Below are positions 19,501-32,871 of a stretch of DNA of 64,000 nucleotides, in pieces; positions within the stretch are counted from its first letter, which is position 1, and each line of letters starts with the position of its first letter. The stretch covers positions 210,425-274,424 of the forward strand of contig MU619250.1 of NCBI GenBank assembly GCA_025201805.1. Direction: 5' to 3'. Under the pieces are notes generated by a model. The model searched no databases, had not been told where the DNA came from, and worked only from the letters and a program-made list of their open reading frames with translations. The stretch comes from Parasitella parasitica NRRL 2501. Lineage: Eukaryota > Fungi > Mucoromycota. The position numbers and the translations under genes were made by a program.

Positions 19501-20270
19501 ATGAAAATACTGTTTTCAAATTGATTTGCAATTGCAAAATTCCAAGAAATGACATAAAATTGTTCACAGTACTACTTTGACTAAGCTGTAAATTTTGATG
19601 ACTGTAACTTCGTATTCATCATTAGCATATACCAAAATAGTGCAAGTAGATTGTTTGGTAAAAGAAGGAGGTATCTCGTACATTTCCATGACATATTGCA
19701 TCTATAGTAGTTTTAATCATCAATAGAATAACTGTTTTCTGAGGAAATTTCATTGAACTTCTTTACTCGATGTATATTGTAATGAGTCAAGTAGCTGCAA
19801 AAAAAAACCCCAAAACTCGCAGAAAAGTGAGATGCACATGGTAACATACTTCTCATAAAAGCGTGTTATCTTAACAGTAGCAGACTTAACGTAGCCGATA
19901 GACAGCTCCGTAAATTATCGATGTATAGCAATCATGTATGCACTTTACAAAGCCAAATTTTTTCATTTAATTCAGATAGCATTACGGTTGCTTCCAAAAA
20001 AAATTTATCAAAATGTATATCGTAAAAGCTGTACAATGTGCATCTTTTTGAATATATCGATCAGTCCTTTGACCTTTCAGCAACTGATGCATTTGATGCG
20101 GCTTCTACCGCATGTCTTGCACTAGTCACTTTTTTTTTTTTTTACCTGATCCCTAATTCAATGAATTGTCGTGTCCAGAAAAGTATGAACTGTTGCCTTT
20201 TGTCATTTGATGCAACCTGGATAATATTAACAACTGAAGGAAGCTATCTTTTTTCCAAACTGTATTCGAT

Positions 20271-23200
20271 ATGGCAGCACCACCAACAAAAATAGTTTTT
20301 CTAATTGATGAACAATCCATCCTCACATCAAAGGTCCAGCTGGATCATTTAAAGGTGTCCATCATGCGCATTCTTTTATTTTACCGTTCGCAGCAGCAAC
20401 AGGTTCTTTGGGGATATCGTTTCTTCAGTACACAAACAAGATACGCAGCCAATTCTATCCGACATTTTTATACCCTGGACAAAGACTCTTTTGCCCGCAT
20501 CGATAACGAATACCAGAAGAGAAATGCAGACCGACCTGGCACAGCAGTTATAGGGACGCCCATTATGCGTATAAAGCAAGTGCTCAAGGATGTCATTGGT
20601 GATTTTCAATGGGAAAACACTGATCTCTGCACTTCTAATCCTGCGCAAAACTACATCTTTCTTTTTACAGGATGCCCTTCTGATGAAAACGATTTGTATC
20701 GATTTTTCATTGGTTCTGCAGACCAAGAAGAGCAAGAAAGAGAGTTGGGCGAGGAAATAAACAGTACGAAATCTAGCATAGCATCTTATGAAATACCTCA
20801 GTACTTTCAAGGAGTCAAGGACAAGCTTGCTGCAACATTGCTGCAAAGCTACAATGAACGCCATATTTCATTAAACTTGATTGATACAGATTTCAAATGC
20901 GCATCCAGCAGCCCCCAAACACAGCTTATAAATCGGCTCATAAAACAGGGATTTATGTCATGGCTAGAAATGTTTGGAGGAACATATGCATTGTATCAAA
21001 TGTTGATTCGCAAAAATGACATATATGGCCACTCTTTTCTGTCTGAATTTACAAACATATTCCCTTTGCGACGACAAGCGATGGTAAATACCCACATCCC
21101 TGCTTGGAAGGGTCCCTTCAAAACCCAATTAGGCAAAACTCTCGGCAACTTTGCATTGTATTCGTCTATTCGGGGTGCTCATTATCAGCCATCGTCTTTG
21201 GCTTTTATTAGAGAAATTCGTACAGTCAATGTTGTCCATGCAAGTCAATTTTCAGTCTCATGGCTCATGAAAAGGACAGCCCAAGATGCGAACGTTGATT
21301 ACAAGTTGACTTATCAGGAGGGAGACTCTTTCAATGAGTTTAACATTATCCTCGACGAACTGTTTGCCACTCAATCCATCTTGATTGCTGATTTGGTTCC
21401 CATGGTTGGTTTTGAGAATATGGCTCGAAAGGTTTGTATCGAGCCCTATTCAAGATGCAGTGCTTCACTTCGGTTTTTAAACATTGATCAGCTTCCGTCA
21501 ACACTGAACCTAAAGAATGTAATGGTAGATCTTGATTACCCAATTGGGACGTATATGACCAGTATCAAAGTACAAATCAAATTGCCAGAGGCACCTTTAC
21601 CTGCTAAAAATCGATCGTGCAAGCTGTTTGCTGAATTACCGAATTGGATGACGAAACTCAAAATAGATGACAAGACAGCTGTAGATGAACCGCAGGCAGA
21701 AGAACAGCCCGTGAAAATACCAGTGATAGAGGTGAACTATGCCGAGAAAAACATGCTATTGCCAGTCAATGTGGATATGATGGGAAAGGCATTGAAAAAG
21801 ATTTACTTGGAAACACTGTATACCCAAAAGGTAATCTTTAATAGTAGACGGCATCAGAGCATGACATTAATGCATGTGAACCAGGATTTCATCGACACTG
21901 CAATTATAAAGATCAATAAGTGCATTGCCCATTTGCTGAAGAATGATCATAGCAGGGAGGACATCATTTCTACTATTTTTGATTACACCATGCCGTTAGC
22001 TGATCTTGATATGAAGCACCACAATGAGATCCCTAATGCCCATAATACACCTAGCAGTGGAAACTACTCGCTAGAACAAACGTATCAGTATCAATGGTGG
22101 AGGCATGTCAAATCAAGAGCTCACGTCAGCCCACATTTCGAACGCATGAACTGTGTTGCCTTGAAATTGAGGGAGTAAGTGCTGATAGCATGATATCTAG
22201 ACCTGCAATAACCAACAGAATAATAGAGCTCAACTCCAAGTGATTAATTATTGCTTTATTTGCAAGCTGATAGACAATCCCAAGCAACTTGAAATCTACA
22301 AACGAGATCCTTTTGACGAGGCACGAAATTTCTTTTCTAAAGTGGTTGTCATCTTCAGTATGAACGACGATATCTCTGACTTTTTGACTGGATTAGATTC
22401 TGAAGAAGGCACACGAGCTGCTCGAAAACGAGATCCTTGTGAGCTAAGTGATCATGCGTTTGCTCAGGTTTTAGGCAAAAGGTATGAGCTCATTTTAAGC
22501 ATTTGGAAAAAGCAGCTAATGAATTTTGTATTTTGGTAGATTTCATGAATTGTCTGATTTAGTCGCTTATTTTAAGGAATCTGCTGGAGCCGATGATATG
22601 GCATCTGCATCCTCCAGTGATTCCGAAGATGGTTTGGACGAAACTGAAGAGCAAACCCGACATCAGCCATCATCATCGAAGCGCCCTGTTTTGCAATCAC
22701 GCACTGCATCTGGTAAACCACTGACGTTTATAATAGACCAATTTGATTAACAATCTATACCTCAGATACCCGAATCGTCAAGCCTTACCATCCGCCTCAA
22801 AAGGCAGCTGCAAAACCTTCTCATTCGCTTAAACTGGAATCGAAACTAGCCAAATCCTTCCTTCCCCAAAAGATAACTAGATCTAGTAGCAATACATTAG
22901 ACCTTTTCTATAAACGCATGGTCAATGTGACGCCGAGTACCACCACCAGTAAAGAATCTCATCGTGGTGAAGCTACCAAAGAATCTATTGCGAAAATGAA
23001 ACGTGCTGCAGTTCATGGTCGACCTACAATGAAGCGAGCGGGCAGTTTTACAAAAAGTGCATTGTCGCCAAGAAGACCAAACAGAGCAGTATCCATGCTG
23101 TCCCAAGCGCCACAAGAAACAGGCACCGTTATTCTACGAAGGGACAATAGCATACCAAACCCTGAGACTACCCCCAGAACATCATTGAATCGATACCTCG

Positions 23201-23988
23201 GGACTAATCTTTTTGCAGACTATGCCGAGGCATGCTTGGTAAGCGAGAAATGAATGAAAAAAAAAAAAAAAAAAAGGCTCATTGTGATAAAGTCTCCTTC
23301 ATCCAGGACTTCGCCCACAACGTCCAGAACAGACACCAGTTATGTGCAATCCGACTATCCTCAAGCGCCAAAGACACCGCAAGGAACATCCTCTCGTTTC
23401 AGAAAGATAATGATGGACAGAACACCACAAAGGCACAATGATGAGGACGAAGGCGGCAAAGATGAGTTTAGTGTCACGCTGGATGGCCAGGAAAGTAAAC
23501 CACCTTATACACCTCGCACAGCAGCCCGAAGAGAACGAGACCGCATCGATCGATCAGAAGTTATGCACAATCCAGGTCGGAATCTCACCTTGAAGTTTGA
23601 AAACATCAAAAAGGAAGAAGAAAAAGAGAGAAACACGCTTGCCATCAAACGAAAAAGAGACATATTCGATGACGATGAGGACGACGATGACGATGGCAAT
23701 GGCGATGGCGATGACGATGGCAACGACGATCAAGAAGATGAGCAGGAGAATGTCAACCCTTCGAGTCCCGCTACAGGAACAACAACGCCATCAAGGCCGG
23801 TTGTGAAAAGATCAAAAACATTTGATTTCGACAATTTTTACAACAATGCCTTTGACACACCACCTGTTCAATTTGGTGGGCAATTGAATGGTATCGATGA
23901 TGACGACGACGATGATAGTGATGATAATGATTTGGATACAGTGCTCAATACGAGCAGTAGAAAGGGCTTTGTATCAGCATTAAAATAA
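20271..23988 (+). CDS. Treslin/TICRR-Sld3-like origin-firing factor. Exons 20271-21830, 21885-22174, 22227-22481, 22540-22712, 22766-23238, 23293-23988
   Basis: The N-terminus (KIVFLID, VLWGYRFFSTQ, VIGDFQWE, NYIFLFTGCP) resembles the remembered Treslin N-terminal domain. The spliced LKLRE|AQLQV and IYLETLY resemble the Sld3/Treslin core. The tail is disordered with many S/T-P sites. Confidence 0.78.
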
Positions 23989-24373
23989 AACAAATCACAC
24001 TAAGCCTTGCCCAATGTTGGGGATTTGTTGTGATCCAGCAATCACTCTTAACTTTGTCAATAGTATGCTCACTTCTATCGACGTTCATTGTATGGTTACG
24101 CTCTTTTGGAAATCACCTATTGCCATTGTACATGATAAATCGAAGAAAAGAGGTTCATTGATCTTGAAAATGGATTCAGGATAATCACCCCGTTTTGCTA
24201 CTGTAAATGAAATCAGCCACAAAAGGGTTCGTTTCCGGTTAGGCGAATGGATATATTTAGTGCAAACATCACATTATGCTCGAATAGTCTTGAGTTCTTT
24301 TCTTTTTCTCTCTCTTTTTTCTTCTTCTTCTTTTTCATATTCATTTACTTATATTTATTCGCATCATCACAAT

Positions 24374-26315
24374 ATGAGTTCAACTAATGGAACTGTAAAT
24401 CCATTTGCAACCGACACAACGGGAGAGCAGGCAGGGTTATATAAAGGCATTGGCGTTTCATTGGCCGTAGCTAGTGGTAATACATATTTATGTGTGTGCT
24501 ATAGCCTACGCAGTACAGTTGACCAAGTCTTTCTTTGAACAGGCATATTCATTGGCAGCAGTTTTGTATTCAAAAAGAAAGGTCTATTACAATCAATCGA
24601 AAAAAAAAAAAAAAAAACCAACATCGCCTAAAAGAATAAATTGCTGATTTTCGGTTTATTTGGTTTTGTTTGTATGTTTATAGGAGGTATTGCTGGCGAA
24701 GGCTACACCTATTTGAAATCAGCAATGTGGTGGGCTGGCATGATTCTTAGTATGTTCATTTACACAATTGAGAATTCACAGATTTTTAATACTTTGTAAT
24801 GTAGTGATTGTAGGTGAACTTTGCAACTTCATAGCCTACGCTTTTACTCAGGCTATCCTCGTTACTCCACTAGGTGCATTAAGCGTTGTGATTAGGTAAG
24901 TCATACCCACAAGACGAATACCAAAAAAAAAATACTAAATGATCTGCAGTGCTGTCCTTTCATCCATATTTTTAAAAGAGCGTCTTAGTTTTCAGGGCAA
25001 AATAGGCTGCCTTCAATGTATTTTAGGAGCCATAGTAATTGTTCTGCATGCACCCGAACAAAGTTCAGCAGATACAACGATTGAAGCATTCAAGCATTTG
25101 GTATTATCAGTCGGTAAGTCAGTAAATTTTATGCTACCTGGCATTGCATTCTAAAACGATACGTGTCCAGGTTTTTTGGTGTACAGTGGTATTGCAGTTG
25201 CAGTCTCGTTGGTGTTGGTCTTTTATTGCGGGCCAAGGTGGGGTAAAAAGAACATGCTAGTGTACATTTCTGTATGCTCCTTAATTGGATCTATCTCTGT
25301 TGTTTTTACTCAAGGGCTAGGCTCTGCTATCGTCCATTCAATCACCCAAGAAAATCAGTTTACAAACTGGTTCATTTATCTTGTTTTAGGGATTGTGGTT
25401 GTTACTCTGATAGTTGAAATAGTCTATCTAAACAAGGCGCTAAACTTGTTTAATACTGCTCTTGTTACTCCCACTTACTATGTCATCTTCACCACTATGA
25501 CTATTGTGAGCTCCATTGTCCTGTACCGAGGTTTCGATGCGTCTCCTGTCGACGTGGCGACCTGCGTTCTCGGGTTCCTGAGTATATGCTCCGGTGTTGC
25601 TCTCTTGCATAATTCGAAAAGCCAACCTTCTTCGTCTTCAGAAGACGCTGCAAAACCAAAAGATGACGATGAAAAAATTTTGCTACAGGATCAACAATTG
25701 CAGAATCAACCTCTTTCTCGAAGACGTAGCATGTTTCAAATGTTTGAAAACAACAGCGACGTGAACCTCAACAGTCAAGCTGAGCATCATGGATCAGAAA
25801 ACCCGGGTGCAGCAGACCTGTTCCCTGCTCCGTTTTCGGGCATAAGTCGTTACGCCAGCACAACAAGACGCAGCCAGTCAATCATAACCAGACATCGAAT
25901 GCAGTCTGTTGCGGATACCGGTATTCCGCCTCGTAGTCCAGCAGAAACACTAAAATCAAGACCTCATTCAAACACCACCTCGATTGGGAATGCAAGCATT
26001 GGCGAAGAGGGGTATAATCGAGAAACAAAATGGGAGCATTCAACACATACCGCTTCTAACATACAAGCGCAAAGCGACTCCAAAGATGATCTGATCTTGG
26101 ACACAGAAGATGCACAATATCAATCTCAAGACACTACTACAAAGACATTTACATCGGTGTTTAAACGAAAGCATACAGCATCATTTTCATTACCTACACA
26201 CCGAGCTCAAAATGAACTAGATCCCATCAGCAGTATGAGAATGCAGATCAATAGTGGAGAATCAGAAGATAGAAAAGGGCTAGTTGAAAATAATTGGGAT
26301 AAATCGCCAGAATAA
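24374..26315 (+). CDS. NIPA-family Mg2+ transporter (DMT superfamily), multi-exon. The exon-2 donor is not found at the poly-A at 24600-24617
   Basis: Motifs GSSFVFKKKGL, AGEGYTYLKSAMWWAGM, GELCNFIAYAF...LVTPLGALSV, YISVCSLIGSISV and YLNKALNLFNTALVTPTYYVIFTT. Confidence 0.92.
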
Positions 26316-29140: not shown

Positions 29141-32100
29141 CTAGAATGTTTCGTTTTGATTTGGACATTTGTTGGTTAGATGGAATCCATATTCTTCGCA
29201 ATTTTCGCAATACTGTAATATACAAAAGAGAGATTTTAAAATGCTGCATTTGTGCGTATCTTAATCGCCCAAACTTACAGGTCTACTAGGATCATCTTTA
29301 GTGAGTGTCACCGCCTTGCAACTGATCAAATCGTGGCCGTTAACTTCACAAAGTTCACAATAAGCGCTTGAATCGTCTCCTACTACGTTGTCCTTTTTGG
29401 TTGTTTGAGGCGTGTTTTTGAGGGATGATGTAGATGATGATGTTTCAATAAGGACCTTGTTCTCATCCTTGAGATCGTCCAGCTCCCTTTGCAGCTTTGT
29501 CACCAGCTTGCGTTCCTTTTCAAGAGCTTCTTCTAAATCGGCCTCTTTGAAGATCTTGGACTCGACGAGGCTTTCTAGTTCTGAAATGTCGCGATTTAGG
29601 TTTACAACCTGACGCTTTTGCTCCTTCTCTTGCTTTTCGACGCTCTCTTTGGCCTCTCGCAGTTCAGTAGCGTGTTGAATGGAGATTTGTTCCAGCTTCT
29701 TTTGATTTTGTTGCAAGAGTTTGGCAATCTTGTCGTCTTCAGCCAAGTCTTCCTTGAGCACGAGCTTGGTCAGTTCATCCTGGCTAGCTTGCTGGTGCAG
29801 TTTTTCGACCTCTTCCATGAGCTTCAAGCACTCCATTTCAGCTTGCTTGTGGGAATCCTCCAATTTGGAGTAATCTTTGGAGATCTTCTTGTTCTCTGAC
29901 TTGAGAGAAGAAATCAATTGCTGGTATTGGCCCAGGTCCTGGTTGCCTTGCTCTGCCTGTTCTTTTTGCTTCAACAACATAGCATTCTGGGCCTGCAACT
30001 TTTCAATTTCGCCACGGAATGTTTCGATTTGGAGCTGGTGCTGCTTTTCATCCACGCTGGCGCTGCTGTTTTGAGAGTTTTGCTCCTTCTCCTCTGCGAG
30101 CTCTCGTTCCAGTTTTTCCTTGGCTTCGGACAGCTTTCGCAGCTCGCTTTCAGTCTTCTTTTGGCTCTCGACAGCAGCACGTACTTCATCAAGGTATTTT
30201 GTACGGGAGGCCAGCTGATCGTCGAAATCAGCTTGAAGTCGGCCTAATTGCTCTTCAAGCTTGGTTTTTTCTTTGGCGAGCTTTTCAGTTTCTTTCGATT
30301 GATCCTTCCATGTCTCGGCTTCAGTTTTGAAAGCTTCGTGGTTCAGTTTTTCACGCTCGAGAGATTCGATCTGCTCCGTGAGTCTATTTCGTTCGCTCTC
30401 CCAGACATCTTGCAAGATGGCGTGCTTTTCTTCAGTCTCCACATTCTTCATAAGCTGTGCAATCTCTTGCTTCAATGTCTCGATTGTCGCTTGAAGCGCA
30501 TCGCGTTTGGCAGCATATTCTTCCATCTGCAGGGTACGCTCCTTTTTCAATTCTTGAATGGTCTCCTCGTAGACTTCAATGGCATCTAAACCAGCTTTGC
30601 GCAATTCCTCTCTTTCCACCTCCAACGAAGCGACTTTGCGACGTTCATCAGCCAAGCTGGCATTGAGGGCTTCACGATCGACACGGTTCATTTCGACAGA
30701 GCTTTCGTAAAGCTCAATGCTTTCCATACCAGCCACCTTCAAGTCGTCAACAGACTGTTGGAGGTTATGGATGCGTTCGCGATACTCTTGCACCAAATTA
30801 GCCTCTTTTGCCAGGTTTTCTTTGACAGTGGTGAGCTCCTTTTTGAGCTTGTCAAAAGCCTCCTTGGAAGCACAATCTTGATGTGCCAGCCATTTGGTCT
30901 CGACGTCCTTGAGCTCTTCAAGCAGACGATCCTTTTCACGCATATGACGCTCGGAGTCAGCCTTGACACGACGGATTTCTCTTTCTTTCTCTTCCACGGC
31001 ATTGCGGTGGGTTTCTACCTGTTCAGAAAGGGAAGCCAAGAACATGTCTTTGGCACGGGCGGCATCACGCAGAGAGCTCATCTTTTCGTGGACTTCTTCC
31101 ATCTCCATTTCCAGTTTCATCTGACGGTCCATGGCATCTGAATCCGAGCCAGGTTGAAAGTACTGATGCTGTGGCGACGAAGGAGACGAAGCCAGCTGCT
31201 GGTGCAGTGATTTGTTCTTTTCCAACAAGAGCTTCTCACCAGCTTGTGCAGCGGCAGTGGCGGCCTCGGCTTCTGCAACCTTGCTTTCGAGCTCGTGCAC
31301 ACGATGTTCGACAACAGACTTCTCCTTGCGAATTGTGCTGATCTCAAACAACGATCTATCTCGCTCTGTGATCAGGTTTTGCTGCTCTGCCTCTAATTCC
31401 TGGACTCTTGTTTCTAATCGCTGGATAATTTGCAGTGTTTCCTTTTGCTGGGCAGTCAATTTGTTGATTTCAGTTGTATGGTTTTCTTTGATCTCCTCTA
31501 CAATGGCCTTGTGGCCTTCTAATGTAAAGAGCTCTTCGTCGTTGGATGCATCGCCCTTCTTCTTAAGCACGAGCGACCGTTCTAAAATCTGCTCTGCTGT
31601 CTTGTTTTGAGTGTTCTCTAGCTTGAGGTATTTGTTCTCGGCTTCCAACACTTCTACACGCAATTGCAGTTGCTGTAAGCGCATGACAGTTTCGTCGGGG
31701 GCTTGCGAGATGGCTTCGCCCAAGATACGCTCTAATCTCTCCTGCGGTGATTCGTGCATCGAAGACGACGAGGTGGACGGAGATGACATTGCAAGGCCAT
31801 TGGCGTTGACGGAGGCAGAGACAGCGGACGTAGTGATTGATTTGGAAAATGCCAAATTGGCGGGAATAGGGGTTTCAGTCAACATATCATCTGACGAAGA
31901 GGATAATAAAGAGTCGTGATAATAGTCATCTGCATTATCTTGAATGCTATGGCCTGTTGGAGTCATTGCAGGTGATGGGATGCCACGACTGTAATGCGTG
32001 GGGGTCGGAGACTGAATAAACGGTTGTGATCTGCGAAGGCTATTGCGCCCAGACGACATGGACACAGGCGAGGTCAGCGGCGACTGCAGAGATGCTACAG

Positions 32101-32871
32101 AGGAGCGCACAGACAATGAAGGCGTGCGACTCTTTTTTTTGGGTTGTTTTTGTTGTTGCTGCTGCTGCTGTGATAACTGCTTTGCGGTTAATCCGATATA
32201 ACGGGCGGCTCTGGATCCATTTGAGGTCAAGGGAGCTGAACTAATGCGATTGTTGACGGGCGGAGACAACGATCTGACGGAATCGGAGTCCTCAGCCAAA
32301 ATAGTTACTTTGGAAGCTAAAACAAACAGACCAGTTTGAGCAGGGCATGAGAAATAGCGCACACTATACAAATACATTGAGAAATGTGTTGCGTTAGAAA
32401 CATGAAACATTTTGGCCAAAAAACAAAAAAAAAGGGGGGGGGGTAGAGCGAGTGATTTTCATGCATTTACCCTTTCACAGATCCATCATTCTTTCCAGAG
32501 CCAACAATATCCAGCTGAATACCAGCCCATACGCCTTCTTTAAATTCAGCTTCACCTAGAAATTTCAAGGTACCGACAATGCCCATTGAATCGACGGCAA
32601 TTCTGTCCCCAATATAAAACGGTTTAGGCCGATTCAAAGTAGGCTTGGGAGAGGTAATGATTCTGCTTTGCACATTTGATTGTTGGTGGTTGCTTTCTGG
32701 GGCGATGTATGAGCGGGAACGTGCTTTTGTCCCTGATCTTGATGGTTTGGGCATTGGAGGAGCATTTTCTGAGATTGTTTTTCTTCTTTTCAGCTCGGCA
32801 GCTGAAGGCTTTCTTGCCAGCCTTCTTGGGTTATTTGTTAAAGTTAAACCAGCGGTTGGTAACCTAGACAT
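29141..32871 (-). CDS. CLIP-170/Tip1/Bik1-like microtubule plus-end protein. Exons 32871-32471, 32363-29279, 29212-29141
   Basis: CAP-Gly domain (WAGIQLD...GKNDGSVKGVRYFSCP), a long coiled coil, two CCHC knuckles (YCELCEVNGHDLISC; YCENCEEYGFHLTNKC) and a terminal ETF*. Confidence 0.92.

Follow-up and report, generated by a model that had tools for sequence, protein, structure and literature searches.

A probable Treslin/TICRR-Sld3 orthologue with an N-terminal vWA domain and Ku-like barrel in the Mucorales fungus Parasitella parasitica

The stretch of Parasitella parasitica NRRL 2501 DNA analysed here, 64,000 nucleotides (nt) of contig MU619250.1 and referred to below as the window, carries at positions 20271-23988 of its forward strand a gene that is split into six exons and has 1148 codons. 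With a probability of about 90%, we take it to be the single Treslin/TICRR-Sld3 orthologue of this Mucorales fungus, with a predicted role in the firing of replication origins. The product of 1148 residues is composed, in this order, of a vWA (CIT) domain, a Ku70-like beta-barrel, a disordered linker, an all-helical Sld3/Treslin domain (STD) and a disordered, acidic tail rich in S/T-P sites; its closest named relatives are from Rhizopus. The gene appears to be present in single copy, as the Pfam model Treslin_N has one match in the whole 32.8-Mb genome, and Sld3_STD has no match elsewhere in it. An earlier note on this DNA, made from its letters alone, had proposed a CIT/vWA domain followed by an Sld3 core and an S/T-P tail, and this architecture is now supported by the Treslin_N match, by profile-profile alignment with hhalign, by fold matches and by the count of the tail sites.

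The gene and its transcript

In the list of open reading frames (ORFs) the gene is broken up, with a 635-residue ORF (20271-22178) followed by four shorter in-frame pieces. The DNA sequence and a transcript contig together join them into one coding sequence of 3447 nt. This contig, from a public run (X1, labelled "RNA?"), matches the window with 0 mismatches over 20205-24006 and omits exactly five introns; of its 3554 nt, 3531 are the window span minus the introns, and the other 23 are what is left of an adapter at the 5' end. All five introns are of the GT..AG type and only 52-58 nt long. The gene is expressed as a spliced mRNA and its six exons are confirmed, which bears out the six-exon structure that the earlier note had read across the split ORFs. 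The parts of the gene are as follows, a slash marking a splice junction.

20205-24006 (+): extent of the transcript contig, the minimum mRNA, with a 66-nt 5' leader and 18 nt beyond the stop codon (run X1 record 1, 3554 nt, six collinear pieces)
20271-21830 (+): exon 1, 520 codons, with the start codon, vWA/CIT domain, Ku-like beta-barrel, disordered linker and first STD helix
21831-21884 (+): intron 1, 54 nt, in frame and stop-free, hidden in the 635-residue ORF
21885-22174 (+): exon 2, from sequence and transcript contig
22175-22226 (+): intron 2, 52 nt, the removal of which makes KLRE/AQLQV
22227-22481 (+): exon 3, from sequence and transcript contig
22482-22539 (+): intron 3, 58 nt, from sequence and transcript contig
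22540-22712 (+): exon 4, from sequence and transcript contig
22713-22765 (+): intron 4, 53 nt, from sequence and transcript contig
22766-23238 (+): exon 5, the best conserved exon against Rhizopus arrhizus (82%)
23239-23292 (+): intron 5, 54 nt, holding a run of 19 A (A19), from the piece table of the contig
23293-23988 (+): exon 6, S/T-P-rich, acidic C-terminal tail and stop codon

Three of these introns deserve a comment. Intron 1 is not visible in the list of ORFs because it is in frame and without a stop, and a gene caller that works on ORFs takes it for 18 additional residues. It came to light because annotated homologues lack these 18 residues and because many database entries of relatives, which are ORF fragments of about 520 residues, stop at the equivalent intron. 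At intron 2, the X1 contig skips from 22174 to 22227, and the KLREAQLQV junction therefore occurs in transcripts; the splice that the earlier note had proposed here to create LKLREAQLQV is thus present in RNA data. The junction at intron 5 is shown by the piece table of the contig only, since the read-laying tool skipped the A19 repeat.

Domain architecture

The domains and blocks recognised within the protein are placed in the window as follows.

20289-20630 (+): Pfam Treslin_N match (PF21854), residues 7-120, E 3.3e-11, 43.5 bits against a curated cut-off of 26.5
20271-21074 (+): vWA (CIT) domain, residues 1-268, from an AlphaFold2 model (predicted local distance difference test score, pLDDT, about 75-88), structural matches and hhalign to animal Treslin
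21093-21500 (+): Ku70-like beta-barrel, equivalent of the Treslin M domain, residues 275-410, from the VIA aligner, Foldseek and hhalign
21753-22600 (+, introns included): STD, the domain that binds Cdc45 in yeast, from the end of exon 1 through exons 2 and 3 to the start of exon 4
23020-23301 (+, intron 5 inside): conserved tail block RAGSFTKSALSPRR..VILRR..ETTPRTSLNRYLGTNLF..ACL/SPS, a candidate Dpb11/TopBP1 docking region

The case for the N-terminal part starts from the Treslin_N match, which clears its curated cut-off in the Pfam check that the earlier note had proposed. When a profile of 19 Mucorales sequences was compared by hhalign with residues 1-450 of animal Treslin, represented by 12 sequences from a profile search, the two aligned over 357 columns with a probability of 99.65% and an E of 4.1e-25. 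The alignment pairs residues 5-408 of the window protein with residues 3-432 of animal Treslin and spans both domains, from which it follows that homology to animal Treslin extends over the CIT and the M domain alike. The first reading of this DNA had proposed a collinearity with human TICRR from the motifs KIVFLID, SIMRILLFY, VLWGYRFFSTQ, HFYTLDKDSF, LKDVIGDFQWENTDL and NYIFLFTGCPSDENDLYRFF. All of these lie within the 635-residue ORF, and the motif pairs proved real in the alignment with animal Treslins.

The structural comparisons agree with this picture. In the AlphaFold2 model of exon 1, the VIA aligner separates residues 1-268 from residues 275-410. The first domain matches the vWA domain of Ku80 (Z 12.2), Rpn10 (Z 11.2) and TFIIH p34 (Z 10.6), the second resembles the cores of bacterial Ku (Z 11.1 and 10.8), and matches to both domains of Ku70/80 reach Z 11.7-12.7. 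The likeness to the vWA and beta-barrel folds of Ku, for which the earlier note had suggested a comparison with Ku70, is there, with Z of 10-13 for the vWA domain and about 11 for the barrel. In a shape search of the ESM Atlas the top match was a cluster of Treslin N-terminal-domain proteins, most of them from plants (template modelling score, TM, 0.53, over 391 residues), and a sequence search of the PDB with exon 1 gave no match. That the N-terminal 410 or so residues consist of a vWA (CIT) domain and a Ku-like barrel homologous to those of animal Treslin is well supported by these results. The M domain of Treslin is the equivalent of the domain of Sld3 that binds Sld7/MTBP.

The evidence for the STD, which binds Cdc45 in yeast, is of a different kind. 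By hhalign, the Mucorales region aligns with the animal Treslin_STD over 115 columns at an E of 5.3e-6 and a probability of 85.9%, and the fungal K-x-[KR]-E-A-Q-L-Q falls on the animal K-V-R-E-C-Q-L-Q. For the structure, the domain was modelled on the closest full-length homologue, R. arrhizus P0012:272-514, with an identity of 69% to exon 2 and 76% to exon 3; the model has a pLDDT of 89.4 and a predicted TM score (pTM) of 0.88. The top four Foldseek matches of this model are crystal structures of the yeast Sld3 STD, 3WI3 and 8J09, at TM 0.60-0.72, with all others below 0.26. A second aligner gave 3WI3_A at Z 18.9, with a root-mean-square deviation of 2.9 A over 191 residues, and the next match at Z 6.3. 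A profile search of PDB sequences with the STD found no match, and Sld3 and Ku came up through the comparison of structures only. Taken together, the alignment, the homologue model and the Sld3_STD matches of more distant fungal relatives given below establish the Sld3/Treslin domain and support the Sld3 core that had been claimed for this gene.

The tail and its candidate docking sites

Exons 5 and 6 together encode 11 S/T-P sites, including LSPRR, TTPR, KTPQ, YTPR and TTPSR, close to the ten or so that the earlier note had counted. Of these, 8 fall in exon 6, where shuffling of its own composition would give 2.85 (p about 0.003). Across the families of the Mucorales, exon 5 has a conserved block with RAGSFTKSA, VILRR and TTPRTSLNR, in this order, and no other exon agrees as well with R. 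arrhizus. The block holds two sites of the type phosphorylated by cyclin-dependent kinase (CDK), a T-P at 23170-23175 and an S-P at 23293-23298, which are 23 residues apart after splicing. The T-P site (TPRT) is invariant in 14 of 14 Mucorales rows of the alignment. Of the 12 rows long enough to include the S-P site, 6 have it, all of them close Mucor/Rhizopus relatives with the continuation CL/SPS. For comparison, T600 and S622, the two CDK sites that are essential in yeast Sld3, lie 22 residues apart (PMC3115804, PMC8807876).

Two further observations concern the tail. Hesseltinella vesiculosa P0026 carries the conserved motif SPTTPRTRMAREFGISP twice in tandem, at residues about 985-1030, a hint that the TP motif may function as a unit. 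Near the C-terminus of the window protein, 23650-23985 encodes a very acidic low-complexity stretch with runs of D/E and G/N, and an unrelated X1 contig matched part of it by low complexity, giving a spurious 202-nt 'joint'.

A proposed role, and the alternatives to it

By analogy with its family, the protein would be a limiting factor in origin firing and would recruit Cdc45, through its STD, to MCM double hexamers already loaded. CDK would phosphorylate the conserved T-P/S-P pair of the tail and so make a docking site for a BRCT protein of the Dpb11/Cut5/TopBP1 type, while the beta-barrel would pair with a partner of the Sld7/MTBP type. The role in Cdc45 loading and origin firing is thus one that we infer from the family.

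Several results weigh against this identification. The model of exon 1 is of moderate confidence only (mean pLDDT 63.6): it is good for residues 1-250 (about 75-88), moderate for 279-402 and disordered for 404-498. Its whole-chain TM to Ku is low, about 0.25, which is due to domain orientation. The STD model is that of the R. arrhizus homologue and not of the window protein. The Pfam models Sld3_STD and Treslin_STD find no match in exons 2-6 read in their correct frames, in the C-terminal part of the 635-residue ORF, or in the five closest full-length Mucorales homologues. Since these models miss both the exon pieces and the closest homologues, the assignment to the STD family is based on profile-profile comparison, on structure and on transitive evidence. 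The Pfam check of the STD proposed in the earlier note accordingly failed on the exon pieces, while relatives reached by profile do pass Sld3_STD. The tail block, compared with the animal TDIN block (ETPLHKQ ... EESPVK), gave an hhalign probability of 0.08 and no profile similarity. Homology to the TDIN was not demonstrable, and because this comparison was negative the TopBP1-type docking suggested earlier is put forward here as a prediction and not as a result. Finally, the MTBP-like partner that had been predicted was not found: MTBP_N, MTBP_C, Sld7_N and Sld7_C have no match in six-frame Pfam searches of the genome, which are weak searches, made with narrow models and with a sensitivity lowered by exon splitting. 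This negative says little, as the models are narrow, the targets are split by introns and the controls are prokaryotic only (14 genomes, with 0 matches for MTBP_N, MTBP_C and Sld7_N and one sub-threshold match for Sld7_C).

Among the other explanations, the one that survives best, though we regard it as unlikely, is that the gene is a Treslin homologue by descent that is no longer a CDK-regulated origin-firing factor, for example if its tail were not a docking site for Dpb11/TopBP1 or its regulation differed. The two negatives just described, for the TDIN and for Sld7/MTBP, speak for it. Set against them are the facts that this is the only gene of the Treslin/Sld3 type detected in the genome, that exon 5 is its most conserved exon, and that the tail keeps the invariant T-P and, in close relatives, an S-P at a spacing nearly that of Sld3. 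Short linear motifs usually escape profile comparison. The function of Treslin/Sld3 is, moreover, essential in every eukaryote studied.

A second explanation would make the protein some other member of the class with a vWA domain and a Ku barrel, such as a Ku70/80 paralogue, an Integrator subunit (IntS13/14) or an M1AP-like protein, the Treslin_N match then reflecting a shared fold only. A language-model search of the atlas did return clusters of Asunder/IntS13, M1AP, IntS14 and Ku at scores of 0.91-0.93, and the solved structures that Foldseek ranks best for exon 1 all belong to Ku70/Ku80 (lowest E 3e-12). However, no solved Treslin N-terminus turned up, and Ku is therefore the nearest solved relative. 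The Pfam model that scores above its curated cut-off is specific to Treslin_N, the animal Treslin alignment (E 4e-25) spans both N-terminal domains, the domain that follows has its unique structural match in the STD of Sld3, and the true Ku70 and Ku80 genes of this genome are separate loci, on contigs C107 and C1. We consider this explanation very improbable. Equally hard to sustain is an artefact in which a vWA gene and a neighbouring short Sld3 have been taken for a single gene, or in which a chimeric transcript contig has misled us: the poorly modelled linker of about 95 residues between barrel and STD (residues 404-498, pLDDT <50) and the many database entries of relatives that end near residue 520 could suggest it, but one contig with 0 mismatches bears the continuous frame of 1148 codons over six exons, the short entries are ORF fragments ending in the first intron of those relatives, and the same domain order is found in annotated full-length homologues from several Mucorales genera, chytrids, Mortierellomycota and Endogonales, as well as in animal Treslins.

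Comparison with Treslin, Sld3 and Ku

Read as a Treslin/Sld3 orthologue, the protein shares with animal and plant Treslin/TICRR (PF21854, PF15292, PF21855) the order of vWA (CIT) domain, Ku-like barrel, STD and S/T-P-rich tail. At about 1150 residues it is much shorter than vertebrate Treslin, with about 1900, and lacks the long C-terminal extension of the latter. Of the Pfam models of animal and plant Treslin, Treslin_N alone is significant in the fungal protein, whereas Treslin_M and Treslin_STD are not; more distant fungal relatives match the yeast-derived Sld3_STD and not Treslin_STD. The TDIN of animal Treslin is not detectably shared by the fungal tail.

With yeast Sld3 (Saccharomyces cerevisiae, Schizosaccharomyces pombe; PF08639; 3WI3, 8J09, 3X37), the shared features are the STD fold, seen at Z 18.9 with the model of the R. 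arrhizus homologue, and the paired CDK-type sites of the tail about 22-23 residues apart. The protein is presumably orthologous to yeast Sld3 as an essential origin-firing factor. Yeast Sld3 is without a vWA domain and has only a truncated barrel of five strands (Ferreira et al. 2022, PMC8807876), while the fungal protein described here has a full vWA domain and a complete Ku-like barrel.

For human Treslin, Ferreira et al. 2022 (PMC8807876) also described a vWA and Ku-like barrel architecture with Ku as its nearest solved relative, and a shared ancestor of Ku, Treslin and MTBP has been proposed there; the architecture seen here fits such a common origin. Like Ku70/Ku80, its best solved-structure matches, exon 1 encodes a vWA domain and then a beta-barrel. 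The identity to Ku is only about 10-12%, however, and in place of the Ku C-terminal arm or SAP there are an STD and a CDK tail.

Distribution in fungi and its evolutionary meaning

An exhaustive profile search returned 96 matches, all of them from Mucoromycota, Mortierellomycota, chytrids or animals; the absence of Dikarya among these 96 is weak evidence. Seven fungal relatives were scored with both Pfam models, and four of the seven pass the Treslin_N and the Sld3_STD cut-offs in one chain.

Jimgerdemannia flammicorona (Endogonales): Treslin_N 34.9 bits, Sld3_STD 108.8 bits
Bifiguratus adelaidae (other Mucoromycota): Treslin_N 29.0 bits, Sld3_STD 35.8 bits
Lobosporangium transversale (Mortierellomycota): Treslin_N 29.9 bits, Sld3_STD 25.0 bits
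Synchytrium microbalum (chytrid): Treslin_N 34.2 bits, Sld3_STD 66.9 bits
Cunninghamella echinulata (Mucorales): Treslin_N no match, Sld3_STD 37.9 bits
Hesseltinella vesiculosa (Mucorales): Treslin_N 20.1 bits (below cut-off), Sld3_STD 25.7 bits
Spizellomyces sp. (chytrid): Treslin_N no match, Sld3_STD 55.6 bits

Word-index searches with a nine-sequence fungal alignment and with the STD region of Jimgerdemannia brought back only the query or its near-identical sequence. The statement that yeasts lack the CIT is taken from the literature.

It is evident from this gene and from its relatives in four early-diverging groups that the full protein of vWA domain, Ku barrel and STD was inherited by fungi. 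Chytrids, Mortierellomycota, Endogonales and Mucorales all have this combination of Treslin_N and Sld3_STD, which makes the vWA domain ancestral in fungi, with a later loss on the lineage to yeasts; the loss of the CIT is thereby placed inside the fungi, after the Mucoromycota had diverged. The earlier note's reading of an ancestral full-length protein, of which yeast Sld3 is a truncation, is in this way upheld. That yeast Sld3 is a truncation had already been deduced by Ferreira et al. 2022 (PMC8807876), and the new part is the loss within the fungi.

It should be pointed out that the advance is incremental. In published papers the CIT is "not present in fungi", and targeted full-text searches of the literature found no paper discussing Treslin in these fungi. 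Pfam and UniProt, on the other hand, already assign Treslin_N to such fungal proteins automatically, and relatives in Helicostylum, Thamnidium and Lobosporangium bear the UniProt name "Treslin N-terminal domain-containing protein". As public databases already carry this label, what is offered is the correction of a textbook statement and not a new kind of protein, and the point added is that early-diverging fungi still hold the CIT.

A wider proposal can be made only tentatively, and we would put it somewhat below even odds. Early-diverging fungi (chytrids, Mortierellomycota and Mucoromycota) may run an animal/plant-type Treslin module that includes an as-yet-unrecognised MTBP-like partner with a vWA domain and barrel of its own, and the vWA domains of both proteins may have been lost together on the lineage of the Dikarya or of the yeasts. 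If this were true, the tractable Mucorales such as Mucor, Phycomyces and Rhizopus would be the simplest system in which to study the role of the CIT, which is unknown even in human cells.

A candidate partner and the neighbouring genes

The earlier note had also called for a search of the genome for TopBP1. This turned up a BRCT gene, represented by one characterised exon of 339 residues that strongly matches a twin BRCT (PTCB-BRCT, 69 bits), at G000:C161:47366-47554 (-), corresponding to L005:3558-4574 (-). It is a candidate for the Dpb11/Cut5/TopBP1 of this fungus, the docking partner that would be expected for the tail.

Within the window, the downstream neighbour at 24300-26315 (+) is a multi-exon gene for a magnesium transporter of the NIPA type, in which the last large exon matches Pfam Mg_trans_NIPA at 133 bits and a small one at 38.8 bits. 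Further along, at 29261-32419 (-), there is an ORF of 1052 residues that ends in a zinc knuckle of the CLIP1 type (28.2 bits) and is possibly a CLIP-170-like microtubule plus-end protein.

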